DNA from: Neoechinorhynchus agilis
Lineage: Eukaryota > Animalia > Acanthocephala
Direction: 5' to 3'
Length of the DNA: 64,000 nt
Assembly: GCA_051530055.1 (NCBI GenBank)
Contig: CM121342.1
Span: 10,369,480-10,433,479, forward strand
Part shown: positions 427-51,300 of the stretch, piece by piece
Layout: each line of letters opens with the position of its first letter
Numbering within the stretch: position 1 is the first letter of the stretch
Position numbers and translations under genes: made by a program
The notes under the pieces: generated by a model
Database searches by the model: none
What the model was told of the DNA's origin: nothing
The model's input: only the letters and a program-made list of their open reading frames with translations

Positions 427-2008
427 ATGACATTTTGCCGCTCGTTTTCAGTGATTTATTCGAGCGCGAATGAGAACACCATCGATGTTATAACGGATGA
501 AGGACTTCCAACAGAATTGCAGAAAAGTCTAAGCCTTCACACTGGTTCGTTCGCAGTCTTTGCAACATCATTGTCGCTATATCCTGAATTCGAGCGACAT
601 ACGTATTTCGAACATGATTTGATTGAGCATATGAAAACAATTTTAAATTTGAGAGTACCCATAGCGCTTGTTGCGTCTGAGGGCAATACGCTTTTCTTCT
701 TACGTGATTGGCTCGGTCTTAGAAGTCTTGTAATGGAATCAATAAACAAAGAGGGCGAGATTGTCGTTCATTTAAGTAGTACAGATCGATTTGGCAATGG
801 GGATGAAGTTGAATATGGAAAAGTGTGGTCTTTCGACCTAAAAACTAGACAGACAAAATGCCTATATGCGGATAAGTACGTCGTATCTTCAATCGAGAAG
901 TTAACGGATCAATGTTTAATTCCACGATTTGTACAAATACTTCGACGAACTGTGAAAGCTCGGTTAAAGCAGAAAACCTTACCTATTTTATTCTCTGGAG
1001 GTGTCGATTCGTTATTATTAGTCAAAATCTGCCTCCAAGAACTCGAGTCGGTAAAAAGAATTTGTCTCATTAACGTAAGTTTCGACGGTGAACACGCACC
1101 TGATAGGATATCCGCCAAAGAAATTCTCGGAACTTTGATGGATAAGCGCATTTGTAAGCACTATATTTGACGTAGGGTTTCTTTTTAGAGCGTCAAATCT
1201 TTAGTCATTACTCATTGGATTGAAGGCTCAATCGAAGATCAAAATGAACTTATCCCAATCGCTCAGTCATGTAAGCCGAACAATAGTGTACTTGATTGGA
1301 GTTTGGCGCGTGTTCTTTGGGTCGCGTTATGGAAATATTCACAATCAAAATGTTGGTCTTCAAACGCAGTCGTTGTAAGTGGACTCGGAGCCGATGAAAT
1401 TTTCGCTGGATATGCGAGGCATTCGCGAGAAACTACAGCCAGCTTACGAAAATGCTTAATGAGCGATCTTGGGAAAGTTGGGAAACGAAATGGAGGCCGC
1501 GATGATCGTGTTGCGCTTTTATCAACTAAAGGAGGCGAATTGTTTTGTCCGTTTTTAGAGAAGGAAGTTGTTGATTTTGCCATGAACGAAGTCAAAGATG
1601 ATTTTAAATTGAAAACGGAAAACGGCAAAGTTGTTAATAAGTTCATTTTGAGGCAAACTTTAAAGGAATGAAGTTCTCAATTCGAATCAGTTTTAATATT
1701 ATGGGAGAAAAGAGATTACTTAAACATCTATTATATTGTTGATTTTTGGTTGATCTTCTCTAAAATTTGTACATATAATCCTGCGCAGAATTTTTTCTAT
1801 AAAATCAAAACCTAAAAGTAAATTTGAGAAAACCATTCCAATAATTAAGCTCGGATGTCCTGAGGATATTGCGATGCGTCCTAAACGAGCAATGCAATTT
1901 GGTTCTAATATAGTTAAAGATGACAAGACGAGATTCGGTTACAAGTGTAAAAAAGGAGCATGCGAGCTGAATAGTGAAGAAATGATAAAAATTTTGAACA
2001 GAATTTAA
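427..2008 (+). CDS. ASNSD1: Asparagine synthetase domain-containing protein 1 (3 exons: ~427-1153, 1205-1665, 1850-2008)
   Basis: Motifs FLRDWLGLRSL, ILFSGGVDS, APDRI, SGLGADEIFAGYARH, RNGGRDDR, PFLEKEVV, NKFILR and LGC..PKRAMQFGS match ASNSD1/YML096W. Intron 1 is GT-AG (1154-1204). Intron 2 appears non-canonical (see findings). Confidence 0.9.
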
Positions 2009-2324
2009 AGCCTAAAAGAGTTCGTATTCTAAAGATTATTAGTCGATACCGTTTAGAAAAACATAGGTGTAAATAAATTTCAATTGTGCTCAACTTTAAA
2101 AAGACAGTTAGACTCCTTAACATGATTATTTTTGAGGTGAATGCGAAAAAAAAACGGTAACGCCATGTTAGAAAAACGCATATAATTTAACCGTTTTAAC
2201 TAGGCGACTCGTGCGTAAAGGAAAGATCATTTTTGATTAGTCACGACGAGACATATGCGACATTGTTAAGTATAAAATACCTAAGAAACGGTTAAAAACT
2301 CTAAAGTCGTCAGCATTCGTAACT

Positions 2325-3688
2325 ATGCCCGCAAAATTTAAAAAGAGGTTGGTTTTTGATCATTTTCTACAACTATCAAGTACCATTTAGAAGCTGTTCC
2401 GCAAATACAATCGCTTCATTAGTCCTCATCATTCTAGGAATAGCTTTAGTAATTTTAGGTATATTTTATTTATAGACGGCCGAAAATATAGTCGCCTTTA
2501 GTCCTCGCACTGTTGTTGACGGATCATCCGACAAAACCAGAATTCAGTTGGTCTTACAATAATATCGACGAATGGAAAGACCATTTTAAGAACTGCGGCG
2601 GAAAAAGGCAATCTCCGATTAATATTAAACAAGTGCATCCGAACGATGATAATACGACAATACGATTTCACGGGCAATCTGCTCAAAGTGAGTTGACGCT
2701 GTGAAATATTTAACCGAAAAATGGAATGCAGATTTGCTGGCAAGATTGAGATTCTTTAGAAGAGTTTTAGCGCTACATGAGGACAATACGAACTAATAGA
2801 TTGACACTATAAATCGCTTACTTAAATCTATATCAACGCTACCATTTATCGACCGAAAAAAATTATTTTTTCTTCTATATTTAAGCCACCGTTATCGTCG
2901 AACTTGAGGAATTTACGGTTATATCGATTATTCAAGATGAAGCAAAAGCCCCAAGAGTTGATCTTCTGAATCGAAACGGATTCAACAATAGATACCAATT
3001 TGATCAGTTCCACTTCCATTGGTCCGACAACAACAAAAACGGCTCCGAGCATCAAATAAACGATACGAGTTACCCACTAGAGGTTAGTCTTTATATTTAT
3101 TATGTTCGATTATTGCAAAGAACACAAGATGCACGCTGTATTCTTCAATACGAAATATAGTGGCGACAAACCTTTGATCGAATTAGACGGTCTTTTAATT
3201 TTTTCAAAATTATTTCAAGTTCGTAATGAAACATAGTGTACATTCAATCTAACAAAATAATATCCAGATTAGCAATAAAGTTTCGAATGAACTTGCATCA
3301 TTCGTTGAATTACTGAATGACATAAACGAAGACCATGAAGTGGAGCATACACTCAACATTCTAAATTTGTTAGACATTCAAGACAAATTGTACATGTACG
3401 ACGGATCACTAACTACACCGGGATGTCATGAAACCGCCACATGGATGGTTATCAAAAACATAGGACATATTCGACCAAAAGACGTAATTTTTTGATAAAA
3501 AAACCCCCGAAAACCCACGAATTGGTTTAGATGGAAGAGTTTAGAAAACTAAAAGAAAAAAATCCACAGGTAAGAACAAATTAAGTATTGCGCTCACAAG
3601 CTACCATGTCCAACATCAGATGTTTCCAAATCATCGACAACCTCAAGCGCTCAATGAACGGATCGTAAAACTTGCTCACATCTCATAA
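2325..3688 (+). CDS. Alpha-carbonic anhydrase with an N-terminal hydrophobic anchor, multi-exon
   Basis: Hand-spliced GT-AG exons give MPAKFKKRSCSANTIASLVLIILGIALVILVLALLL, then WSY..CGGKRQSPINI, QFHFHW, GSEHQ, YPLEMHAV, YDGSLTTPGCHE and NHRQPQALNER. These include the zinc-ligand histidines and the Thr199 loop of alpha-CAs. Confidence 0.9.
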
Positions 3689-4632
3689 GTCAAGCTTATT
3701 AAATATAATTTTTTCAGATAATTTTGAAAATTCGAATGCCCCAGTGCATGGACATAGATAAGTCAATTTTGGGCCCATTGTAAGATAAAAGTACAGATTC
3801 TTTTATAAACTCTATAACTATAATTTGTCCCTGTCATTAAAAGAGAATATAAGGAAATAAGGTGCAAGTTTATTATCATAGCATTTTGCTGAAGTCTTTG
3901 AATGAAACAGATAACCGTAAATCAAAGAGTTTGTACATTTGGGTTTAAAAGAAAAGGTTCAATCGACCGTAGGATGCGATCCGACCGCTTTACGTAGGAT
4001 AGATTTCAGGAATTATAAAATGACGGCACAGTTAGTTTACTTATTTTGAATATTGTAACGTTCATCTACATTCACGGACAAGTATTATAAAGGTAAATTT
4101 TAAAACGTTATATCAGCCATTTGAGAATCTTTAAGCGGTTAAATAAACGAAAGTTGCGATTTAGGTTGGGATCGTAAACGTAAAATACGTTAAAGATGCA
4201 AATTATAAAAAGCTAGACGTAAGCGCTTGAGATTGGACCGGAAAAGTAATTCTCTTGCACTTCATGTGCTTTAGTGTTCTGCGATTTCTGGAGAAAGGAC
4301 CTATAAAATACTTGATATAATTCTTTTTATTTTTAGTGAAAATACACAATCAATCCTGGCACTAAAAAAGTAATGCTTTTTAGCGTCGTCTTTATCTAAA
4401 TTTGAACGTTGCTGATGGGCAAAATACGTGAGTCTTGAGAACTCAGAAAGTGTTTTTAAGACCTTGTGTGGATAACTTGATAATTTCAAACTAAACTAAT
4501 TATTTGTTATTAAAAATCGATTCGTTTTAACGCTTCTCATTCGAATTCTGGATTTGGTTTGCTTGCGATTGATACAAGTGTTCAGCTTTACGAAAAAGCT
4601 TCTTTATTTGATTTTCAACATATTTATACAAA

Positions 4633-12000: not shown

Positions 12001-12020
12001 AACGCTATGATGTTCGTGTT

Positions 12021-14422
12021 GACGAAACTGTCCCCAAACGCGAAAGAATCAATGAGGTGTAGATCTTTCTGCGATTTTTCTGATCACATCGATACAGCAA
12101 ATTAACGGATTGGTTGTTTTTAGATCTCATTTAAATGCGACTTTGACATTAGCGTTGATTGCCCAAAAATATCAAGCAGTACTTTTTTCGTTAGGAACTG
12201 TCATAAACTGCATTCTTCCTTTCGTGTCGGCAAATTAAAATATATCAGAATTGCTCGGTAATCGTTCATTTTAGTGTTCTTTTTCCACTGGTTTCATTGG
12301 CCCTTCTTAATCTGGCCATTTTTCGTTCCTTTAAACTTGACGTATTTTCTGTTGTTTTGCCAAAAGTTTATGTCTCGGAGTAACCTCAGCACGTTATAAA
12401 CCTCCAGCTTTTTATATGGCATCTACCCCTCTTGCCTGAAAACTGCCAATGTATACTCTTTTCAAAAAAGGGCATCCTATTTCGGCCGAATCATTCCCTC
12501 CAATTTCCATTCTACCCGCCCTTTCAAAAGTCATCGAAAAATGTTTAAAATCTCGTCTTCCTTCACTTCTCCACGAAAAGTTATCGCCCCTACAATTTTG
12601 GCTTCCGGCTCAGATTTTCTGCAACCGATGCCCTACTTTGCATTTATGACACGCTTCTACGTAACATCGACAATAATCCCTCCCATGTAACCCGTCTCAT
12701 TCAACTTTATTTATCTAAGGCTTTCGACTCAGTGGACCATTCCCTCCTTCTCCGGGCCTGCTCCGATTTTGGTCTCAACTTGTGGCAGATCCGCTGGCTC
12801 GATTCTTATCTTTACAATCGCAAACAGTACATTCACTGCCGTTCTACCTTTTCTATCGGTCTATCCCTCTCCAAAGGCGTACCTCAAGGTACTGTCACCA
12901 CTTATCTTTAATATTTTCCTAAACCACTTCAAACCTCTCTCCTCTCACTCTAAACTCTTATACGCCACGATGTCACCCATTCACCACCCCACCTCTCCCT
13001 TTCTTTAACCTCCAAAGAAGGCACACACATAAAAAATTTCTGCACTGATTACAAACTCCATCTCAATTTCTCTAAATGCTTCGAAATGATCCCCTCTCTC
13101 CCGCAACCCCACATCATCCCCAGAGCTTCTAAGTGACATCCCGCGAGTAACCTCTCGAAGAATTCTGGGTATCCAATTTCAATCAAACTTGAAATGGGAC
13201 TCGCACATCACTCTCTCCCTCAAGCGCAATACTTTTAAAATTCATCTCCTCAAGCGCCTCCGACATTTAGGAATCGCTTCCATCTCTCACCTACGCTTAC
13301 CCCGTATTTTGCAACCTTTCCAAATCGCTAATCCGCCATCTTGAAATTCTTCACAAGCGCATCTAAAATTTGCACAACTTACTTTCCCCCTCTCACCGAA
13401 TGCCTTGATGCTATTTTCATTGAACAATCAAAACGCCTCTCAAGCCTACCACCACAATTTCTTCCACATATCGCCCCTTTTCACACGAGCACAAGACTCG
13501 TAATCCTAATTCGTTTCATCCTACCTCGCACCTCCCTACACCTACGCTCCTTTTCCCATGCTGCCCATAATTTCTCTGGGATATCATAAATTAAAATGAA
13601 CCAGAGGAAAGATCAACCTTACAAGCGCTCCTGTAAGCAATAAACACGAATTCAAACCAGGACCCTCCAACCCAACCGGATATTCTCAATCGAACGGACA
13701 CTTGCTCACCAGGACGAACCGTCACCGACTGGATAGTTCCCACCCGAATAGGCACGAGCAGATATTAAAACCCGAACTGACATCCCTCGACTGCATATTC
13801 CCATATTAACGGATGACGACCCGAAGGTACATGGGTCCTCCTAAACCTTTCTTCGTATCCAATAAACGTGTTATTATCATTATTATTCTGATATGTTCAT
13901 TAATTTGGATGATTCTTGCCCTTTGAAGATTTAATTTTCATATTCTTATCGGCGGATTGAATTGTTCATGTTTATATCTGGCGTAAAAATTAGAAGAATT
14001 TATTGATTCGAATATTCTGGCACAATCTTGTGCATTTATCGAGGTTGTTTAAGTGTTTTATTCCCACCGAAATATCGAATTAAATAAAATCTTTCAATTT
14101 TTCTGCCGCCGTATAAAAACAGATCGAAATATCGTAAAATGATGATTAAATTCATATTAGCACATTTTATATAGCCCTCGAATTAAAAGATCTTAATCGG
14201 GATTTTTCGTCTAATGTTTTTACTTGTGTTATAATTTGGGTTGCTTATGAACAGTCATTATCAATTCGCCGAGTTCTGAAACTGTCATTCATTTTTTCAT
14301 AAGGTTTCCTTTCGTTTGATTGATTGTTTCACCTCACTTTGTGTATCTTGGCGCAGTCACTTATTGAACTTTATAAATTAATTCATTCATTGATCCGTGG
14401 ATTCAAAACTTATCGCGTCGAG
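12021..14422. repeat. Copy of the ~950 bp segment at 22821-23769, split by a LINE (12021-12381 and ~13895-14422)
   Basis: Near-identical sequence on both sides of the LINE, from gacgaaactgtccccaaacgcg to aaaacttatcgcgtcgag. Confidence 0.9.
12382..13890 (+). mobile_element. 5'-truncated, degenerate CR1/L2-like LINE (RT domain and 3' UTR with TTA-rich tail)
   Basis: PISILPALSKVIEK, LSKAFDSVDHSLL and GVPQG RT motifs with frameshifts. The 3' end gaaggtacatgggtcctc...aataaacgtgttattatcattatt is shared with other copies. Confidence 0.85.
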
Positions 14423-21640: not shown

Positions 21641-21929
21641 CAGTCTCATTAGTGATCTTATTGAACAATCCTATCAAACGCCACACTGGATTCCAGCTCT
21701 TGGCTTTAGAGAGTTCCGTTGCTATATAATCAAGACCGGTTCTTTTTCTGCTTTCATTTCAATGATCGCAAAAACCCTTAAAAGCAACACAAAAATTCAT
21801 ATGGTTAAAAGTACACAATACAATACATTTATGCTATTATGTACGATCGATCATGGTCACTATTGGATAAAGACAAATCTACAATGAACAAAAATAAATA
21901 AAGTTCATTTTTTTGTTCACAAATTCCTC

Positions 21930-22640
21930 CTTTTCGTCCAATTCTGCAACTCTCGTCATGATTCGCAGCATTGTCGCGTTGGATCGCCCCGTTGATTCGC
22001 TGTAACAGGAAGCTGCTGGATCGCATATCGCCGGTGGCATGTTTTAGCATCTTTCCCAGTCGAAAAAGGAAATAATCAGCTTCTTTTCCGAGGCATCCCA
22101 GCGTTTCCACCGCAATCGGGATGAACATATATTGATGCCCATTCCTCACTGAAGCTGGCGACTGCTCCCGACTTTGAAGTGGCATCCCGTAAGTGGGACG
22201 CTGCGAGTGTGTTGAGGCAAGTAAAATCCCAAGCCAGTATTTTCCCGGAACACCATGGGAGGAGCGTTTACCGTCATTCCGGGAGAGTCCGACTGGTTCG
22301 AATCGAGCGAGAAAACCGTCCGTTGAGAGGGCCTCCCTGATTATGCGGTTGACTGCTGAGTGCCGTGCGTGGCGAGCATTTGAACGCTTGCAGTCAAGGC
22401 CGTGAGTTCTCGACCTCCCCGCCGACATATATGAGCCTGATAAATTGATGCCAACTGAAGTACCACAGCGACGGTGATGGCTTGGCCATCCAGCCTCGTG
22501 CCAACAGCCGTGATCGGGAAAGCCTTCAAGAAGTCGCTTGAGCGTGGAGCCGAGACTGCCAGGAGACGAGCTCTATCGGTGGAAGATGAGCATGAGTTGA
22601 GAAGCCGCGGATAGGACGCAGTGTGAAGCGAGGCAGTTCA
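21930..22640 (-). mobile_element. Degenerate CRE-type (RLE) non-LTR retrotransposon, 3' fragment
   Basis: GLDCKRSNARHARHSAVNRII, FIPIAVETLGCLG and LLQRINGAIQRDNAA: the CCHC/RLE C-terminus, with frameshifts. Confidence 0.8.
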
Positions 22641-27074: not shown

Positions 27075-27372
27075 ACAAAAAATTTCAATTTCTTTGTGGC
27101 GTCAAATTTTATCGGGTTTTTACTCCCAATTTGACATTCATGACTATGCAATCACCATTATTTGATGACGTCACCCATTTTGTTCATTCAATGCTTTAAC
27201 CAACAAAAAGGTTAATATTTTTTTGTTGCGTCAAATTTTGTCGGGTTTTAACTCTCAATTTGACATTCATGACTATGCAATCACCATTTTTGGATGACGT
27301 CACTTATTTTGTTCATTCAATGCTTTAGCCAACAAAAAGATTAATATTTTTTGTTTCGTCAAATTTTATCGT
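27075..27372. repeat. Tandem duplication, ~129 bp unit, ~2.3 copies
   Basis: gtcaaatttt recurs at ~27101, ~27230 and ~27358. Each full unit contains a TGACGTCA. Confidence 0.85.
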
Positions 27373-27647: not shown

Positions 27648-30600
27648 TTCGAAGAAAAATTCGAGTAAAAGCTTAATCGATTGATCTCAATTACAGTGAT
27701 TATTAGAGTTACCGCTTGGTTTATGCAGTACAACGAGGCAATGCTGCCAGCGTGATAGCGACCGCCGAGGAAGGAACAAAGCTCCAATTTCACGGACGGT
27801 GGTTATTGCACGTTTTGTGCTTTATTATTAACGGTGGAATGATTTGACCGTTTCCTAAAATAAACTCGTCTCCCTAGAAAAAGGTACGAATGCCACTTCA
27901 AAAATATGCCTTAATCTTAGACGAAAAACTAATCCAATTTATACTTTTAGTGACCATACAAACCCGGCCATAACCAATTTGAATTATTTGAGATATTTAG
28001 AAGGAAGTAACCTCGCCTTATCATTGTTTTCGAAGAAAAATTCGAGTAAAAGCTTTCTACTGATCTCAATTATAGTGATTATTCAAGTTACCGCTTGGTT
28101 TATGCAGTACAACGAGGCAATGCTGCCAGCGTGATAGCGACCGCCGAAGAAAGAACAATGCTCCAATTCTACGGACGGTGGTGATTGCACGTTTTTTGCT
28201 TTATTATTAACTGTAGAATGATTTGACCGTTTCCTAAAATAAGCTCGTCTCCCTAGAAAAAGGTACGAATGCCACTTCAAAAATATGCCGTAATCTTAGA
28301 AAAAAACTAATCCAATTTATAGTCTCAGTGACCATACAAACCCGGCCATAACCAATTTGATTTATTTGAGATATTTAGAAGGAAGTAACCTCGCCTTATC
28401 ATTGTTTTCGAAGAAAAATTCGAGTAAAAGCTTAATCGATTGATCTCAATTATAGTGATTATTCAAGTTACCGCTTGGTTTATGCAGTACAACGAGGCAA
28501 TGCTGCCAGCGTGATAGCAGCCGCGAGGAAGAGACAATGCTCCAATTCTACGGACTGTGGTGATTGCACGTTTTTGCTTTATTATTAACTGTAGAATGAT
28601 TTGACCGTTTCCTAAAATAAACTCGTCTCCCTATAAAAAGGTACAGATACCACTTCAAAAATATGCTTAATCTTAGACGAGAAACTAATCCAATTTATAC
28701 TTTTAGTGACCATACAAACCCGGCCATAACCAGTTTGAATTATTTGAAATATTTCGAAGGAAGTAACCACGCCTTATCATTGTTTTCCGAAGAAAAATTC
28801 GATGAAAGCAATCGATTGATCCCAATGATAGTGATTATTCAAGTAACCGCTTCGTTTATGCAGTACAACGAGGCAATGCTGCCAGCGTGATAGCGACGGT
28901 CGAGGAAGGAACAAAGCTCCAACTTTACGGACGTTGGTTATTACACGTTTTTTTGCTTTATTATTAACTGTAGAATGATTTGACCGTTTCCTAAAATAAA
29001 CTCGTCTCCCTAGAAAAAGGTACGAATGTCAATTCAAAAATATGTCTTAATCTAGCGACATTTAATGAATTACAGCCTCTATAAGTTTTCTATTTGGTTA
29101 CTTTTCTTTACATTCACCACCTCCCACCAAATTCCAGCTTTTGTCCTTCCTCGACCGTCGCCATCACGCTGGCAGCATTGCCCCGTTGTACTGCCAGCGA
29201 GATATTTTGTCGAAGAAATAAGCCTGCTCTTGAGTCTCCGGTTGCCTCTCTCAATTTCTTCGAGAGATCCTTGAGCAGAGAGAGTGCCGAGCTGCCGAGC
29301 GCTCCATACGTCTCTACCCCAAAGGGGACAAAATAGTGAGCCCTCGATGGCTGCATATATTTTCGTACCTTCCTCCCTTCCGCTGCACTGGCGGCACCAC
29401 CGGCGATTTCGAGGGAGTAGGGGATGTTGCTGGCTGCGAGGGTGTCCACACACGTGGCGTCCCAGAGAAGGCATTTGCCCTCCCGCCACGGGAAGACCGA
29501 AATTCCATCGGGCCTACGGCCGTCTAGTCTGCAGAGGTGGGCGGGTTCCAGGATGTTCGGGAAGTTCGCCGTTCTCAACGCCCGAGAAATTGCGTTATTG
29601 ATTTCAGAATGGCGTGAAAACCTTCCTGCTGACCTTCTGCAGACGAGACCGTGTCGCCCGAAAGCATCAACCAAAGACCCACATCGACAGCGATGGGGCG
29701 TGCATATCGGGAGACCGAGTCTTAAGGATACTGCGATCCTCGTCACCTCGTCAGTAAGAAGAGTTCCCACAGATGCCAGAGGAACAGCCTCCAACCACGC
29801 CCCAGATTCTCGTGTTGAAACTGCCAACAGTCTAGCTCGGACGACCCCATCGCGAGAACCTGAAAGAAGAGGCTGTGAGCTCTCGCGACAAGAGGTCCGT
29901 CCCAGATCGACTGTCTGAGGCCATTCACGGGAACTTGGTTAGCGCCTGTCTGCTGGCACCATTCCTCAACCGCCACCACGAAATCCCGGTCAAGACAAAA
30001 CTTTTCTTTCAAAATGTTCTTCGAGACTGGTAGGCTCCCCTCAAACGATCCAAGAAAGGCCGGCAAAGCAAGGTCGACTAGTGCCCGAATTACCAATCCC
30101 CCAGATGACACAGGCAAAGAAGCTTGTCGCCACGCCTCATCTGAGAGCTGGACATTTAAAATACGCTCGAGGCAAGCCCTCACCTTATTGTCCAGCTTTG
30201 CCAATCCTTCTTTGTGTTTGAAAAATGTTGCTGTGCGAACAATGAATTACAGCCTCTATAAGTTTTCTATTTGGTTACTTTTCTTTACATTCACCACCTC
30301 CCACCAAATTCCAGCTGACCGTTTCCTAAAATAAACTCGTCTCCCTATAAAAAGGTACGAATGCCACTTCAAAAATATGTCTTAATCTTAGACGAGAAAC
30401 TAATCCAATTTATACTTTTAGTGACCATACAAACCCGGCCATAACCAATTTGAATTATTTGAAATATTTCGAAGGAAGTAACCACGCCTTATCATTGTTT
30501 TCGAAGAAAAATTCGAGTAAAGGCTTAATCGATTGATCCCAATGATAGTGATTATTCAAGTAACCGCTTCGTTTATGCAGTACAACGAGGCAATGCTGCC

Positions 30601-33600
30601 AGCGTGATAGCGACGGTCGAGGAAGGAACAAAGCTCCAACTTTACGGACGTTGGTTATTACACGTTTTTTTGCTTTATTATTAACTGTAGAATGATTTGA
30701 CCGTTTCCTAAAATAAACTCGTCTCCCTATAAAAAGGTACGAATGCCACTTCAAAAATATGTCTTAATCTTAGAAAAAAAACTAATCCAATTTATAGTCT
30801 CAGTGACCATACAAACCCGGCCATAACCAATTTGAATTATTTGAGATATTTCGAAGAAAGTAACCTCGCCTTATCATTTTTTTCGAAGAAAAATTCGAGT
30901 AAAGGCTTAATCGATTGATCCCAATGATAGTGATTATTCAAGTTACCGCTTCGTTTATGCAGTACGACGAGGCAATGCTGCCGGCGTGATAGGGACGGAC
31001 GAGGAAGGAACAATGCTCCAATTCTACGGACGTTGGTTATTGCACGTTTTTTTGCTTTATTATTAACTGTAGAATGATTTGACCGTTTCCTAAAATAAAC
31101 TCGTCTCCCTATAAAAAGGTACGAATGCCACTTCAAAAATATGTCTTAATCTTAGACGAAAAACTAATCCAATTTATACTTTTAGTGACCATACAAACCC
31201 AGCCATAACCAATTTGAATTATTTGAGATATTTCGAAGAAAGTAACCTCGCCTTATCATTTTTTTCGAAGAAAAATTCGAGTAAAAGCTTAATCTACTGA
31301 TCTCAATTATAGTGATTATTCAAGTTACCGCTTCGTTTATGCAGTACAACGACGCAATGCTGCCAGCGTGATAGCGACAGCCAAGGAAAGAACAAAGCTC
31401 CAATTTTACGGACGGTGGTGATTGCACGTTTTGTGCTTTATTATTAACGTAAGAATGATTTGACCGTTTCCTAAAATAAACTCGTCTCCCTAGAAAAAGG
31501 TACGAATGCCACTTCAAAAATATGCCTTAATCTTAGACGAAAAACTAATCCAATTTATACTTTTAGTGACCATACAAACCCGTCCATAACCAATTTGAAT
31601 TATTTGAGATATTTAGAAGGAAGTAACCTCGCCTTATCATTGTTCTCGAAGAAAAATTCGAGTAAAAGCTTAATCGATTGATCTCAATTATAGTGATTAT
31701 TCAAGTTACCGCTTGGTTTATGCAGTACAACGAGGCAATGCTGCCAGCGTGATAGCGACAGCCAAGGAAAGAACAAAGCTCCAATTTTACGGACGGTGGT
31801 TATTGCACGTTTTTTTTCTTTATTATTAACGGTGGAATGATTTGACCGTTTCCTAAAATAAACTCGTCTCCCTAGAAAAAGGTACGAATGCAACTTCAAA
31901 AATATGCCTTAATCTTAGACGAAAAACTAATCCAATTTATACTTTTAGTGACCATACAAACCCGTCCATAACCAATTTGAATTATTTGAGATATTTAGAA
32001 GGAAGTAACCTCGCCTTATCATTGTTCTCGAAGAAAAATTCGAGTAAAAGCTCAATCGATTGATCTCAATGATAGTGATTATTCAAGCTACCGCTTCGTT
32101 TATGCATTACAACGAGGCAATGCTGCCAGCGTGATAGCGACGGTCGAGGAAGGAACAAAGCTCCAACTTTACGGACGTTGGTTATTGCACGTTTTTTGCT
32201 TTATTATTAACTGTAGAATGATTTGACCGTTTCCTAAAATAAACTCGTCTCCCAAGAAAAAGGTACGAATGCCACTTCAAAAATATGTCTTAATCTTAGA
32301 CGAAAAACTAATCCAATTTATACTTTTAGTGACGCTACAAACCCGTCCATAACCAATTTGAATTATTTGAGATATTTAGAAAGGAAGTAACCTCGCCTTA
32401 TCATTTTTTTCGAAGAAAAATTCGAGTAAAAGCTTAATCGATTGATCTCAATTATAGTGATTATTCAAGTTACCGCTTGGTTTATGCAGTACAACGAGGC
32501 AATGCTGCTAGCGTGATAGCGACAGCCAAGGAAAGAACAAAGCTCCAATTCTACGGACGGTGGTGATTGCACGTTTTTTGCTTTATTATTAACTGTAGAA
32601 TGATTTGACCGTTTCCTAAAATAAGCTCGTCTCCCTAGAAAAAGGTACGAATGCCACTTCAAAAATATGCCTTAATCTTAGAAAAAAACTAATCCAATTT
32701 ATAGTCTCAGTGACCATACAAACCCGGTCATAACCAATTATAATTATTTGAGATATTTAGAAGGAAGTAACCTCGCCTTATCATTGTTTTCGAATAAAAA
32801 TTCGAGTAAAGGCTTAATCGATTGATCCCAATGATAGTGATTATTCAAGTTACCGCTTCGTTTATGCAGTACAACGAGGCAATGCTGCCAGCGTGATAGC
32901 GACAGCCAAGGAAAGAACAAAGCTCCAATTTTACGGACGTTGGTTATTGCACGTTTTTTTGCTTTATTATTAACTGTAGAATGATTTGACCGTTTCCTAA
33001 AATAAACTCGTCTCCCTAGAAAAAGGTACGAATGTCAATTCAAAAATATGTCTTAATCTTAGACGAAAAACTAATCCAATTTATACTTTTAGTGACCATA
33101 CAAACCCGGCCATAACCAATTTGAATTATTTGAGATATTTCGAAGGAAGTAACCACGGCTCATCATTGTTCTCGAAGAAAAATTCGAGTAAAAGCTCAAT
33201 CGATTGATCTCAATTATAGTGATTATTCAAGTTACCGCTTGGTTTATGCAGTACGACGAGGCAATGCTGCCAGCGTGATAGCGACAGCCAAGGAAAGAAC
33301 AAAGCTCCGATTTCACGGACGGTGGTTATTGCACGTTTTGTGCTTTATTATTAACGGTGGAATGATTTGACCGTTTCCTAAAATAAACTCGTCTCCCTAT
33401 AAAAAGGTACGAATGCCACTTCAAAAATATGTCTTAATCTTAGAAAAAAAACTAATCCAATTTATAGTCTCAGTGACCATACAAACCCGGCCATAACCAA
33501 TTTGAATTATTTGTGATATTTCGAAGGAAGTAACCACGGCTCATCATTGTTTTCGAAGAAAAATTCGAGTAAAAGCTTAATCGATTGATCTCAATTATAG

Positions 33601-35110
33601 TGATTATTCAAGTTACCGCTTGGTTTATGCAGTACAACGAGGCAATGCTGCCAGCGTGATAGCGACCGCCGAGGAAGGAACAATGCTCCAATTCTACGGA
33701 CTGTGGTGATTGCACGTTTTGTGCTTTATTATTAACGGTGGAATGATTTGACCGTTTCCTAAAATAAACTCGTCTCCCTATAAAAAAGTGCGAATGCCTT
33801 GCCTTCAAAAATATGCCTTAATCTTAGAAAAAAAACTAATCCAATTTATAGTCTCAGTGACCATACAAACCCGGCCATAACCAATTTGATTTATTTGAGA
33901 TATTTCGAAGGAAGTAACCACGGCTCATCATTGTTCTCGAAGAAGAATTCGAGAGTAAACTCAATCGATTGATCTCAATTATAGTGATTATTCAAGTTAC
34001 CGCTTGGTTTATGCAGTACGACGAGGCAATGCTGCCAGCGTGATAGCGACAGCCAAGGAAAGAACAAAGCTCCGATTTCACGGACGGTGGTTATTGCACG
34101 TTTTGTGCTTTATTATTAACGGTGGAATGATTTGACCGTTTCCTAAAATAAACTCGTCTCCCTATAAAAAGGTACGAATGCCACTTCAAAAATATGTCTT
34201 AATCTTAGACGAGAAACTAATCCAATTTATACTTTTAGTGACCATACAAACCCGTCCATAACCAATTTGAATTATTTGAGATATTTCGAAGGAAGTAACC
34301 ACGGCTCATCATTGTTTTCGAAGAAAAATTCGAGTAAAAGCTTAATCGATTGATCTCAATTATAGTGATTATTCAAGTTACCGCTTGGTTTATGCAGTAC
34401 AACGAGGCAATGCTGCCAGCGTGATAGCGACCGCCGAGGAAGGAACAATGCTCCAACTTTACGGACGTTGGTTATTGCACGTTTTTTTGCTTTATTATTA
34501 ACTGTAGAATGATTTGACCGTTTCCTAAAATAAACTCGTCTCCCTAGAAAAAGGTACGAATGTCAATTCAAAAATATGTCTTAATCTTAGACGAAAAACT
34601 AATCCAATTTATACTTTTAGTGACCATACAAACCCGGCCATAACCAATTTGAATTATTTGAGATATTTCGAAGGAAGTAACCACGGCTCATCATTGTTTT
34701 CGAAGAAAATTCGAGTAAAGCTTAATCGATTGATCTCAATTATAGTGATTATTCAAGTTACCGCTTGGTTTATGCAGTACAACGAGGCAATGCTGCCAGC
34801 GTGATAGCGACCGCCGAGGAAGGAACAATGCTCCAATTCTACGGACGGTGGTGATTGCACGTTTTTTTGCTTTATTATTAACTGTAGAATGATTGACCGT
34901 TTCCTAAAATAAACTCGTCTCCCTAGAAAAAGGTACGAATGCCACTTCAAAAATATGCCTTAATCTTAGAAAAAAAACTAATCCAATTTATACTTTTAGT
35001 GACCATACAAACCCGGCCATAAATATTTTGAATTATTTGAGATATTTCGAAGGAAGTAACCTCGCCTTATCATTGTTATCGAAGAAAAAGCTTACTCGAT
35101 TGGTCTCGAA
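27648..35110. repeat. Satellite array of ~382 bp monomers (~16 copies), interrupted at 29054-30316
   Basis: The unit recurs about every 382 bp (gcagtacaacgaggcaatgctgccagcgtgatagcgac...gaccgtttcctaaaataaactcgtctccc...) with only SNP or indel variation and no unique spacers. Confidence 0.97.
29064..30316 (-). mobile_element. 5'-truncated CRE-type (RLE) non-LTR retrotransposon inserted in the satellite
   Basis: Post-RT region (QASLPVSSGGL), CRCG..GRHGLVC..RHSEINN knuckle, RPDG..PW..GKCLLWDATCVDTLA endonuclease and AVQRGNAASV terminus. One frameshift between the two ORFs. 76-bp direct repeats at the ends. Confidence 0.92.
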
Positions 35111-35454
35111 TAAATCAAATATGACCGAATGAATACTCACTGAGAGCTTACATTGATTACCCGAATGATTTTCTTTGTGGACCTCCGGTATGTTGTCCAT
35201 CTAAAACCACGGCTTCTTCCATACTTTCTGCCCGACCACAGCTGCCTCTCTGCCTGTTTGCTGCTGCTGACAACGCCGCTTTGTGTGTGTGTGGGTGCGG
35301 CGCGTGTGGTGTAGATAGAACGAGAAGCGCGTGCAGTACGTGTCTCGCGCGCGCGCGAAAGGGGCTTACTTTGAGAGCAGCGACAAGCTTCACACCTCCT
35401 ACACTAAAGCCTTCTCACCGCACCCAACTACATATTCTCTCGCTCTCTCTCTAG

Positions 35455-36213
35455 ATGGATACAAACGAATCTACCGGAGCAGGACAGCAACGTAGGACCC
35501 ACAAACCCAAGGGCCGGATGTCTGCTTATACGTTCTTCCTTCAGACCTGTAGAGAAGAATTCCGGAAATCGAATCCAGAACAACCTCTTAGATTCACGGA
35601 CTTCTCTAAAGAATGCTCAAGCAAATGGAGGCAACTAAGCGAACAGGACAAAACCAAGTTCTTTGATATGGCCAATCGAGACAAAATCAGATATGAACGA
35701 GAAATGGACTCGTACGCTCCACCGCCGCCGTCAACAACAACAGCGACCAATTTAAACATAAATGATAATGAAACAAAACGAAAACGAAAAAAGGATCCAA
35801 ACGCACCCAAAAGACCTTTATCTGCTTTCTTCATCTTCTGCTCTGATCAAAGGACTAAAGTCAAAGAAAAACATCCAGAATTCTCTGTGGCAGATATTAG
35901 CAAACATTTAGGCACCGTTTGGGCCACTATGACTGATGAAGACAAAAAACAGTATTATCAACGAAATCAGACGGAAAAAGAACGGTATCAGGCACAAATG
36001 CTCGAGTATAATGCAAACATAACAGCTACTAAAAGAAGTCGACCACCGGCGGCTGCATCGGCGGCGATGGTGGTTGTTGATCAAGTCACTGGTAGTGATT
36101 TAATCATGATGCAACAACAGCAGCAAGCGATGATGTTCAACCCGGACGGAGGACATAATGTTATCCAGCAACCCAATGAACCATCGTCAGACTATAGACG
36201 AAGGGCCATGTAG
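35455..36213 (+). CDS. Double HMG-box protein, HMGB/DSP1-like, intronless
   Basis: KPKGRMSAY..CREE box A and KDPNAPKRPLSAFFIFC box B. The tail is Ala/Gln-rich rather than acidic. Confidence 0.95.
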   Translation: MDTNESTGAGQQRRTHKPKGRMSAYTFFLQTCREEFRKSNPEQPLRFTDFSKECSSKWRQLSEQDKTKFFDMANRDKIRYEREMDSYAPPPPSTTTATNLNINDNETKRKRKKDPNAPKRPLSAFFIFCSDQRTKVKEKHPEFSVADISKHLGTVWATMTDEDKKQYYQRNQTEKERYQAQMLEYNANITATKRSRPPAAASAAMVVVDQVTGSDLIMMQQQQQAMMFNPDGGHNVIQQPNEPSSDYRRRAM

Positions 36214-40905: not shown

Positions 40906-41033
40906 GTTATGAAATATTTTGAAAGAGAGGAAACCTCATCTCATGAGCTGAAAAGATTTTTTCTTGGTGTTAAAACCTTTCCTTTTTAAATTAATGATGA
41001 GGCGAGGCTTCCTCTTTCGAAATATCTCGTAAC
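40906..41033. mobile_element. MITE-like hairpin with arms related to the satellite monomer
   Basis: gttatgaaatattttgaaagagaggaaacctcatctcat pairs with atgaggcgaggcttcctctttcgaaatatctcgtaac. Confidence 0.65.
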
Positions 41034-41403
41034 AATAAAATCCGTTTATTTTAAGTAAATAATTTTTTTAATAAATAACCTTTAAATTCCATTTGCTAAC
41101 TCATGATTTACCCGATTTTAAGAGAAGAAATTAAAAAGGGCATTAGAATATTACTCAAAGTTTTAAACGAATTCTCAAAACATTGTTGATACATTCTCAC
41201 AAGAGCAAGCCTCGATGCAGCCATTTTGTTTCCTGTGCTGCAGAGTTCAACTTAAAAGAATGTACGCAGTCTTTTTTCTGTATGATGCACGCAAGATCTA
41301 TTTAAAACATGAAGAAAATGTACATTTTTACGTGCATTCAAACACATTCATCGCACGCGATATTTCCTGACGAACAAAAAGTATTCACTGTGTGTGTATT
41401 GCA

Positions 41404-49744: not shown

Positions 49745-51300
49745 GTTATGTTCTATGCAACCGCGGATTTCCTCACACTGGCAGCATTCCCTCGTTGTAC
49801 TGCGAGGGAGATGTTTTGTTTGAGGAATGCTGTCGCACGCGGGTCCCTTTTCATCGCCATCGACTTCTTTGCCATATCTGAAACCAGCTGGCCCGAACGT
49901 TTCGATCCCGAAACGCACCAAATGGAAGCTCTCAGTCAGCTCAACGCATTTTGCCGCTTTCCGATGTTCCGCTGCACTCGCTACAGCGCTGGGGCCTTTA
50001 CCGGCTAAATCAGCGAAGGACTTGGCCATGGTGTCGGTGCAGGTTGCATCCCATAAGAGATACTTCCCTCGGCTTCAAGGGAAGACTGCTCGGCTCCAAG
50101 ATGTTTGGAATGTTGATGGAGGTCAGGGCACTACTCAGAATCGCGTTGATATCGGCAAGACTAGGCGACCATTCGGCTGCCCGAATGCATAATAGAGCAT
50201 GTAATCCTTTGGCTTCTAATTGCGAGCCGCAGCGACACTCGTGTGGGAAACAGATGGGGCACTCAATCTCAAAGAGAAAGCTATCCGGAATGTTTCGATG
50301 CCCAAAAGAGACCCCAACTTTTCGGCCGGGATGAGCAAAACCATGAGTCGCGAACGTGACCTCTCGTCCAGTTGGTCCAGAAATGATTTTTGAACCGACT
50401 GCTTTTGGCACTTCTGGGGTATTGTGGTTTGTCCTACTTTGGAGGTCTATGAGGAGAGGGCATTATTAAAATGTTCGTCGTTAGACTCCGGATAGATCTT
50501 AAGGGAGTTCTCTCGACTAGCCGAAATCGAAGAAAGAAAGGTCGGCAATGCGACGTCCTCCATGAGTCTGAGTCCTGAACTTCCGTAGTTGGAGGGTAAC
50601 GTCAGTTGTTTCCACGAAGAATGGTCGAAATCGATATTGACAATTTGGAAGAGCTTATTCCGGAGAAGATCATCCAGACTCGATAGATCATTCTTGCACG
50701 CGAAGGCGGGTGCAGATCTCGGCATGTGCGGCTTCGTGAGACTTTAGCTCCGAACATCTCTCACACAGCAAACTCAGCGCGGCAAAGATATTTGCTACGT
50801 CTCTCGGAACATTCTCCTTCAAAACGCATGAACCCAGGAGACTGAAGTCACAAATATTGATTCGTTTGATGCCCGGTGCGACATTTTTGAATTGCTAGTG
50901 TAACTGCGAGTTTCTGTTTCGTCTGTTCAACTCGAAGCCTATTTTGGAGCTGATCTCGATGATGCAGTTAAGATCAACCAGAACAGAGAGAGGGTCGCCT
51001 CCCAGGGTGCCGTCGTCCAGGTACCACGCGTTGAAGTTCGATTTTCGTTAACTTACCAATGGTTTGATTGCAATGAAGCCTTTCGGGCCGAGGGGGTCAC
51101 CAAGGCTTGAACGATTGCTTCGTCTCCACAAGGAGAGCAACAGCCGAGTTGCGCTGGGCGGAGTAGGCAGTCGAAGAAATCCTTTTCGAAACGATTTTGG
51201 CCACTAAACGCCTGAGTGTTGTGCCCAAGGAAAAATAAATTATCAGCCGTGAAAAAGGCAACACAGATAGATCCCGAAAAGTTACCGGCTGGCCAGACTT
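49745..51300 (-). mobile_element. Degenerate CRE-type (RLE) non-LTR retrotransposon including part of the RT
   Basis: GTTLRRLVAK, NAWYLDDGTLGG (RT catalytic motif), WKQLTLP, CRCGSQL..GLHALLC, GIETFGP and LAVQRGNAASV. Many frameshifts. Confidence 0.88.

Follow-up and report, generated by a model that had tools for sequence, protein, structure and literature searches.

A single-locus 382-bp tandem repeat of Neoechinorhynchus agilis that carries fragments of a LINE and a palindromic MITE

A tandem array of 382-bp monomers lies in a gene-rich part of a 64,000-nucleotide stretch (the window) of the Neoechinorhynchus agilis genome. It comprises about 16.2 monomers with 86-97% pairwise identity (about 93%), lying at 27648-29053 and 30316-35089 on either side of an inserted retrotransposon. 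The array is probably a locus-specific tandem repeat that arose when a 382-bp segment with two dead transposon fragments in it was duplicated at the DNA level; because it is present at one locus only, we favour local amplification of DNA over propagation of a mobile unit. The original prediction described the monomer as a fusion of two mobile-element pieces amplified in tandem. Two such pieces are indeed present, but the LINE piece comes from a subfamily (B) other than that of the inserted copy, and approximately 170 bp of the monomer belong to neither the LINE nor the MITE and are low-copy DNA.

Tandem Repeats Finder (period 379/382) resolved the left block (27648..29053, + strand) into 3.7 copies with 91% matches and the right block (30316..35089, + strand) into 12.5 copies with 93% matches, and a BLAST search with one monomer returned 15 full and three partial monomers. 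The left block begins at monomer position 185, within the MITE loop; decayed monomer-like sequence continues beyond the right block to about position 35115. The whole run measures about 7.5 kb with the insert and about 6.2 kb as array sequence alone, and its edges, at monomer positions 185 and about 232, both differ from the LINE 3' end. A search of the 46-Mb assembly found the full monomer only at C2:10397127-10404568; the genome-wide count proposed with the original prediction therefore gives one locus. A satellite in the strict sense would be present in many copies or form long arrays at more than one locus, which this single array does not. The monomers are nevertheless arranged head to tail at constant length and have significant homology to dispersed transposable elements (TEs), both features of a TE-derived tandem repeat or satellite. 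As the array occupies one locus of about 6.2 kb in a 46-Mb assembly, 'local tandem repeat' is the better name, and its 16 copies at a single gene-rich locus, 340 bp upstream of an HMG-box gene, make it an emerging tandem repeat rather than a classical satellite. No higher-order periodicity was found in the array and no open reading frame (ORF) of at least 100 amino acids lies within the monomers; ORFs of that size in the array region are confined to the insert or run out of it. No segment of the monomer stands out by higher conservation (pairwise identity is 92.3% for the LINE tail and 92.3-95.6% elsewhere), which argues that the array may have no sequence-specific function.

The LINE-derived part occupies monomer positions 262-367 (30577..30682, + strand, in a representative monomer). 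These 106 nt are the entire 3' terminus of a copy, truncated on its 5' side, of the abundant and dispersed LINE subfamily B, and retain the last 20 or so codons, the stop position and the 3' untranslated region (UTR). The monomer consensus is 88-92.5% identical over these 106 nt to 12 dispersed subfamily B copies (z 55-69 against shuffled sequences), and the match spans the stop codon and the entire 3' UTR up to the last base of the element. All 12 copies end at one common base, corresponding to monomer position 366/367. Among 866 candidates, more than 40 scored dispersed loci are matched by positions 262-367 alone. Dispersed subfamily B copies differ in their 5' ends (275-930 bp) and share a single 3' end. 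The inserted element belongs to a sister subfamily, A, to which the LINE part of the monomer is 72% identical overall; judged by sequence, the piece in the monomer is that of subfamily B and not of the element now inside the array.

The similarity to the insert on which the original prediction was built is nonetheless real. Monomer positions 262-320 match 29136-29194 on the reverse strand (59 nt at 93% identity; E 2e-20 in a search of the window), the local alignment score of 42 far exceeds that of 500 dinucleotide shuffles (8.8 +/- 1.0; z 33), and the 60-mer quoted in the original prediction translates to AVQRGNAASVIATVEEGTKL as claimed. This 60-mer had been placed in every monomer, which is only approximate because it is exact in just two, at 28860 and 30577, which flank the insert; 13 more carry it with 1-5 substitutions. 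The insert is also closer to the monomer, as had been noted, than are the relatives near 22 kb and 50 kb, which are much more distant. The former (21683..22604, - strand) is an old fragment of a distant relative in the same LINE group, with about 45% amino-acid identity in the endonuclease region, and the latter (49773..50719, - strand) is an old fragment of another relative, with about 50% amino-acid identity and DNA similarity over 47 nt.

The low-copy DNA of the monomer has paralogues that retain the uninterrupted state. Piece B (monomer positions 34-93; 30349..30408, + strand) is 88% identical to four paralogues at C2:10.81-10.98 Mb, and piece A (positions 206-261; 30518..30576, + strand) is 84-90% identical to the same four. 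In these paralogues (L047-L050), which lie 0.4-0.6 Mb from the array, piece A directly adjoins piece B and the LINE piece is absent, with the gap starting at most 2 nt from the first LINE-derived base; L047-L049 lack the MITE as well. Their A-B junction looks like an empty site for the LINE piece. The four paralogues are copies of one segmental repeat and therefore amount to one independent observation, and no homology between their flanks and those of the array was found beyond pieces A and B. The gap measures 152-153 nt rather than the 106 nt of the LINE piece, so that an extra 47 nt must be assumed to have accompanied it. A stretch of 47-48 nt directly 3' of the LINE end (positions 368-382 and 1-33 of the next monomer; 30683..30730, + strand) matches nothing else in the genome and is not present in the empty-site paralogues; the LINE piece probably carried it in as a variable 3' extension. 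We found no clear target-site duplication around the LINE tail.

The second transposon fragment, at monomer positions of approximately 94-205 (30411..30517, + strand), comes from a palindromic MITE flanked by TA, of which it keeps the loop and one arm but not the other arm. About 119 candidate loci, often inverted pairs, make up the family matched by positions 86-203, and the arm is 77-86% identical to many loci over 85-118 nt. In full hairpins of this family (L039, L041 and L044), the two arms measure 58-109 nt and are complementary at 93-95% of positions, and the family ends read TATA.../...TATA. With inverted arms that form a near-perfect hairpin, short length, many copies and TA at its ends, the family has the features of a palindromic MITE. 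A search of the right flank for the missing arm yielded only an AT-rich match of 17/18 nt (z 6-7). The hairpin arm at 40993, to which the original prediction had matched the monomer, is a weakly related copy (40983..41047, - strand; 77-81% identity). The match exists but is weak, at 81% over 36 nt (40993-41028; E 0.002), and far better ones occur elsewhere in the genome; the 11-mer GAGATATTTCG does recur, at 41018, 43761, 45340 and 63758 (11 hits versus 0.03 expected).

The element that interrupts the array (29054..30315, - strand) is a 1,262-bp, 5'-truncated non-LTR retrotransposon of subfamily A, of the type with a restriction-like endonuclease (RLE). The reverse transcriptase (RT) part is missing; what remains is the C-terminal linker with the endonuclease region, followed by the stop codon and 3' UTR, and the C terminus reads AVQRGNAASVMATVEEGQKLEFGGRW before the stop. 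Its orientation is as originally described, with the monomers sense on the + strand and the insert on the - strand. The insert is young and shares 99.65% identity with its siblings elsewhere. It lies at monomer position 73/74, outside the LINE-derived part, and its two junctions fall in different monomers. Monomer positions 1-73 to the left of the insert (28981..29053, + strand) recur to its right (30316-30388), and we rejected this 73-bp direct repeat as a target-site duplication, as the two copies differ at 3/73 positions, compared with the 0.35% that separates the insert from its siblings. The 3' UTR and variable tail of the insert (29064..29138, - strand) have an identical 75-76-nt copy at its 5' junction (30241..30316, - strand); this second copy of the 3' end is 100% identical but 10 nt shorter at its end, and it abuts the truncated 5' end of the body without intervening sequence. 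The arrangement suggests template switching by the RT of this family. It is not recurrent: among 13 loci, only L026 had an extra 3' fragment, about 225 bp from the junction. The family has approximately 4,150 candidate loci on all three chromosomes and all contigs, and the downstream flanks differed in 12/12 copies examined.

The single long ORF of this element (1179 amino acids; L037:998-4537, - strand) has a central RT, a C-terminal region with CCHC and PD..D..K restriction-like endonuclease motifs and no APE domain. RVT_1 was its sole Pfam hit; inspection of the translations by eye, guided by established knowledge of R2 and RLE elements, identified the motifs C-x-C...H...C, RRPDG, WDATC and K..KY. 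In the PDB, the RT weakly matched the Bombyx R2 structure 8gh6, and the N terminus carries about 18 MPPPPST repeats. Searches for a clade name returned only unnamed relatives in the atlas search, and unnamed proteins (26-38% identity) with one unrelated named hit in the word search. The original prediction called the element a CRE, and an RT with a C-terminal RLE and no APE domain agrees with that clade. CRE1/2, SLACS and CZAR are specific for spliced-leader genes. The element does not share this specificity: the roughly 4,150 loci are dispersed and the array is not a spliced-leader gene. The element is of RLE type; the CRE label is tentative and membership of the clade is unproven.

Together, these observations suggest a sequence of events for the birth of the array. 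The starting point would be a low-copy A-B sequence, the junction of which is kept in the same-chromosome paralogues. A palindromic MITE may then have inserted just 3' of piece B, followed by insertion between A and B of the last 106 nt of LINE subfamily B, probably together with the 47-nt 3' extension. A severely 5'-truncated, dead-on-arrival copy is what target-primed reverse transcription usually produces. A unit reaching from A across the LINE tail and B as far as the middle of the palindromic MITE would next have been duplicated head to tail, and unequal exchange or replication slippage could have expanded it to about 16 copies, which drifted to about 93% identity. The duplication mechanism is read solely from the unit boundary at the MITE loop, and the position of this boundary at the centre of the palindrome hints that hairpin breakage began the process. 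Finally, a copy of the active sister subfamily A would have landed recently and by chance, in antisense orientation and with its junctions in different monomers.

It is conceivable that the array instead serves as a source of small RNA or double-stranded RNA against the LINE family, its transcript folding into a 59-bp imperfect duplex or feeding a piRNA-like pathway. The window contains the inverted 59-nt LINE segments that such a duplex would need (28860-28918 and 30577-30635 versus 29136-29194; 93% identity), and the family of the insert is young and apparently active. We consider this improbable, given that only 106 of the 382 nt in each unit derive from the LINE, at 72% identity to the active subfamily A, and that this part is no better conserved than the rest. 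The antisense insert is moreover a single recent event of the kind expected by chance, as about 4,150 loci in 46 Mb correspond to about 0.56 per 6.2 kb. Still less probable is the more specific proposal that the array, which has sense LINE tails in every unit and a recent antisense copy, is transcribed to supply small RNAs (piRNA-like or endo-siRNA) that act on the retrotransposon family most active in this parasite, whose genome is very compact; if it were true, the locus would be a newly born TE-silencing locus at an early stage. Published RNA-seq for Neoechinorhynchus agilis comprises 74 mRNA libraries (PMC12690905). The original prediction also suggested that the array is a landing pad, that is, the preferred target of a site-specific CRE- or SLACS-like element. 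Many RLE-type elements target tandem repeats specifically (PMC4640811), and one copy does sit inside the array. This suggestion is contradicted by the dispersal of the family over three chromosomes with unrelated flanks, and by the lone insertion in the only array, the site of which (position 73/74) is not in the LINE-derived part. With about 4,150 family loci in unrelated surroundings, one insertion in some 6 kb is expected by chance (P ~0.43), and genuine targeting is very unlikely.

The complete LINE 3' end in each unit, and the neighbouring insert whose duplicated 3' end suggests RT template switching, could also be taken to mean that the 382-bp unit is a SINE-like non-autonomous retroelement with a LINE 3' tail, laid in tandem by the LINE machinery, for instance through template jumps. 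This idea is close to refuted and we give it very little credence. Dispersed whole-unit copies ending at a LINE-type 3' end were not found; the full-length matches in the 46-Mb assembly are all in this array. In the reconstructed ancestral stretch the LINE tail has a central position, rather than one at the end of a unit followed by target DNA, and it is evident from the paralogues that A and B adjoined each other in the genome before the LINE arrived. Neither array edge, furthermore, falls at the LINE 3' end. A unit of this length is typical of arrays of small-RNA genes, such as those for spliced leader, 5S or snRNA, or of hammerhead retrozymes, in which case the similarity to TEs would be incidental. 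Nearly the whole unit is, however, explained by TE pieces and paralogous DNA. Rfam gave no gathering-score hits in the window and, for three monomers at E up to 10, two chance-level hits (E ~7); ARAGORN found no tRNA, and none of the monomers contains the hammerhead core CUGANGA. Another 382-bp satellite, at C2:1.72 Mb, has no similarity to the monomer at E 0.01, so that the shared length is coincidental. It is extremely unlikely that the array is one of these known gene families. The original prediction had named such a gene array, or a CRE match no better than that of shuffled sequences, as grounds for refuting it, and neither was observed. Local duplication of a stretch holding dead transposon fragments remains our preferred explanation.

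On this explanation, the locus illustrates step by step how dead transposon fragments within a stretch of DNA can end up in a tandem repeat, with paralogues that keep the pre-LINE and pre-MITE states. It may be of use as an illustration in studies of how satellite DNA originates and in annotating the repeats of Neoechinorhynchus agilis, and changes no current view; the origin of a tandem repeat from TE scraps is of a known kind, and nothing here shows that the array has a function. The resident LINE resembles CRE1/CRE2, SLACS and CZAR, as well as R2, NeSL, R4 and Utopia, in having one ORF with a central RT, C-terminal CCHC and PD..D..K motifs and no APE domain. Unlike those elements, it is not specific for spliced-leader genes or a repeated target, and it is abundant, dispersed and equipped with about 18 N-terminal MPPPPST repeats. 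The unit resembles SINEs and other non-autonomous elements with a LINE 3' tail in its complete LINE 3' end, the part recognized in target-primed reverse transcription, but differs from them in having no dispersed copies and in that its tail is internal to an ancestral genomic stretch. The closest parallels are the TE-derived tandem repeats, a well-documented class (PMC5932611, PMC9659126, PMC6947457, PMC4079207). As in TE-derived satellites of this class (PMC9659126, PMC6947457, PMC5932611, PMC4079207), the monomers here are recognizably built from TE fragments; as in those that include the foldback-derived Tetris (PMC4079207), the unit holds a foldback or MITE arm and would have expanded at the DNA level after the death of the TE. 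In contrast to these satellites, the unit here is not one TE or a TE dimer but joins the tail of a LINE and half of a MITE to DNA of non-TE origin, and in contrast to the double insertion model from Drosophila (PMC5932611), the array did not come from double insertion into one site.

Genome-wide searches of the assembly (46,219,100 bases; of its 102 contigs three are large, at 19.4, 16.4 and 7.8 Mb) placed the whole 382-bp monomer at this locus only; the published N. agilis assembly is described as 46.2 Mbp in 102 contigs, with an N50 of 16.4 Mbp and 94.26% in three contigs (PMC12690905). The original prediction of a 382-bp tandem array at 27648-35110 was borne out by Tandem Repeats Finder, which reported a left block (27648-29053, 3.7 copies) and a right block (30316-35089, 12.5 copies), both with a period of 379/382, and by BLAST with a single-monomer query, which found 15 full and 3 partial monomers. 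The monomers are 86-97% identical to one another, with no higher-order pattern seen among them. Both edges of the array lie close to the unit boundary, the first at monomer position 185 and the second, where the repeat peters out, at about 232. The 60-mer said to occur in every monomer is present with 1-5 substitutions in thirteen, but is exact in only two, both adjoining the retrotransposon copy that splits the array (the insert). No part of the monomer is better conserved than the rest, the LINE-derived tail is among the most variable (92.3% pairwise identity), and the monomers themselves contain no ORF of at least 100 aa, all of which speaks against the LINE-derived sequence being under selection.

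Genes in the window are ordinary eukaryotic ones, such as UBA1 exons and an HMG-box gene. The array is located in the upstream region of a two-HMG-box gene (35455-36213, plus strand), which starts about 340 bp past its downstream end and is preceded by a GC-rich stretch at 35230-35420. Just upstream of the array, and separate from it, lies a 129-bp tandem repeat (27088-27371; 2.2 copies, 91%) with a CRE/ATF-like palindrome, GATGACGTCAC, in each unit.

The proposed match of the monomer to a CRE-type element held up against a shuffled control, scoring 33 standard deviations over dinucleotide shuffles, and monomer positions 262-320 aligned to the insert by BLAST at 93% over 59 nt. Positions 262-367 alone returned 866 first-look candidates and dozens of scored loci on all three chromosomes (85-88%), twelve of which we fetched for comparison. 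These twelve belong to a single family: they retain 275-930 bp, their 5' ends varying, and share one 3' end. A multiple alignment puts this end precisely at monomer position 366/367 and shows similarity to the monomer setting in abruptly at GCAGTACAACG. Over 106 nt these copies share 88-92.5% identity with the monomer consensus, against only 72% (76/106) for the insert, whose 3' UTR differs. The shared 3' end and the level of identity indicate that the LINE piece comes from this family, subfamily B, whereas the insert belongs to its sister, subfamily A (81-84% protein identity in the endonuclease region). Each monomer thus holds the complete 3' terminus of a 5'-truncated subfamily B copy: the last codons, the stop position and the whole short 3' UTR. 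The fetched subfamily B copies end ...CTTTATTAT(T), without a poly-A tail. One of two short motifs, GTAAAACC or GTTCTACAA, recurs after this end, perhaps as an alternative 3' end or as a sign of weak target preference. The relatives reported at 22 kb and 50 kb do exist, at only 45-50% amino-acid identity.

The A-type endonuclease region gave 4,150 first-look candidates in the assembly, many 98-99% identical. A full-length copy (998-4537 on the minus strand of fetched locus L037, C1:10323515-10332225) encodes 1179 aa, with RVT_1 as its sole Pfam domain and a reverse transcriptase that weakly matches the Bombyx R2 structure 8gh6. The N-terminus of the protein has about 18 tandem MPPPPST repeats (21-bp DNA period), along with one zinc-finger-like motif. 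The C-terminus contains C-x-C...H...C, RRPDG, WDATC and K..KY, which, from what is known of R2-type elements, we take to be a CCHC motif and a PD..D..K restriction-like endonuclease; this C-terminal region makes the family an RLE-type non-LTR element. In another copy (L032), an internal deletion has brought the MPPPPST repeat right up against the middle of the element, and within the window an 83% match to the full-length 5' region (reference positions 153-546) lies at 12900-13279, inside a stretch of strong negative GC skew (12001-14000). A word search found mainly unnamed proteins at 26-38% identity, and an atlas search found unnamed relatives only. Insertion into spliced-leader genes defines CRE1/2, SLACS and CZAR. 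That specificity is theirs and is not seen in the family here, since the downstream flanks of 12 copies all differ. RLE-type elements are described as often but not always target-specific (PMC4640811; PMC7650587).

The insert (29054-30315, minus strand, 1,262 bp) reads as the C-terminal part of the protein, ending in AVQRGNAASVMATVEEGQKLEFGGRW and a stop. Its identity to several siblings reaches 99.65% over 1,156 nt, which makes it very recent. Monomer positions 1-73 are present on both sides of it. As a target-site duplication this repeat was rejected: its two copies differ at 3 of 73 positions, against about 0.25 expected at the insert's age. The junctions therefore fall in separate monomers, and a net 309 bp, possibly with whole units besides, has been lost. 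The 3' end of the insert (29064-29138) is duplicated at its 5' junction (30241-30316; 75-76 nt, 100% identical), where the copy lacks the last 10 nt and is fused to the truncated 5' end. This arrangement, the sole clear case among 13 loci, would be explained if the reverse transcriptase had switched to a second RNA 3' region while the element was being inserted. The suggestion that the array is a landing pad fared less well. About 4,150 candidate loci spread over 46 Mb amount to some 0.56 copies expected in 6.2 kb, giving a probability of about 0.43 for one or more, and the insertion point, monomer position 73/74, lies outside the LINE-derived part, so nothing points to targeting.

Monomer positions 86-203 are 76-86% identical to some 119 candidate loci, which often lie next to each other in inverted pairs. 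Fetched examples of this MITE family have arms of 58-109 nt that are 93-95% complementary and spaced by 22-59 nt, with TATA.../...TATA ends; the monomer contains a single arm plus the loop, as far as ...AAATTCGAG, and no second arm. The 11-mer shared with nearby hairpins is real; the cited arm at 40993-41028 is a weak relative. A second tandem array built from this family (C3:101236-103213; 168-bp period, about 8 copies, 94% matches) suggests that MITE arms have given rise to such repeats more than once in this genome.

The remaining monomer DNA, piece A (positions 206-261) and piece B (34-93), matches four loci at C2:10.81-10.98 Mb, all copies of one larger duplicated segment. The flanks of these four paralogues share no homology with those of the array. 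Piece A abuts piece B directly in all four; relative to the monomer, the gap opens within 2 nt of where the LINE-derived sequence begins and closes 47 nt past the LINE 3' end. Because these 47 nt have no other match in the genome and subfamily A copies carry variable extensions of about 30-56 nt beyond the conserved 3' UTR, we infer that they arrived with the LINE piece. The MITE is absent from three of the four paralogues as well. The fourth has an independent insertion of about 1.5 kb bounded by inverted MITE-family arms, about 8 bp from the array's MITE position (C2:10808000-10813000, local ~2561-4091; TAAT/TA duplication). It may be a larger or composite family member, inserted at what could be a local hot spot.

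These paralogues also bear on what the array is. A SINE-like mobile unit is contradicted by them, with piece A joined to piece B, and by the confinement of the monomer to one locus. To the extent that Rfam, ARAGORN and a core-motif scan can show, the array is not a gene array with incidental CRE similarity, as these found no SL, 5S, snRNA, tRNA or hammerhead. Another 382-bp satellite of this genome, at C2:1.72 Mb, shows no sequence relationship to the monomer. A role as a small-RNA source is a remote possibility, as the sequence would allow a 59-bp imperfect duplex.

The proposed chimera of two mobile-element pieces thus stands for the LINE tail and the MITE arm, but the remainder is low-copy DNA and the LINE source is subfamily B. 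An ancestral A-B sequence would have gained a MITE 3' of piece B and a dead-on-arrival LINE-B tail between pieces A and B; the 382-bp stretch that runs from piece A as far as the middle of the MITE palindrome would then have duplicated in tandem and expanded. The unit boundary lies at the loop/second-arm edge of the palindrome, a hint, though no proof, that the duplication began with breakage and repair of a hairpin. There are well-documented tandem repeats built from parts of transposable elements, LINE pieces and foldback or MITE arms among them (PMC9659126, PMC6947457, PMC5932611, PMC4079207). The array is a new instance of this type, unusual only in how cleanly its steps can be read.
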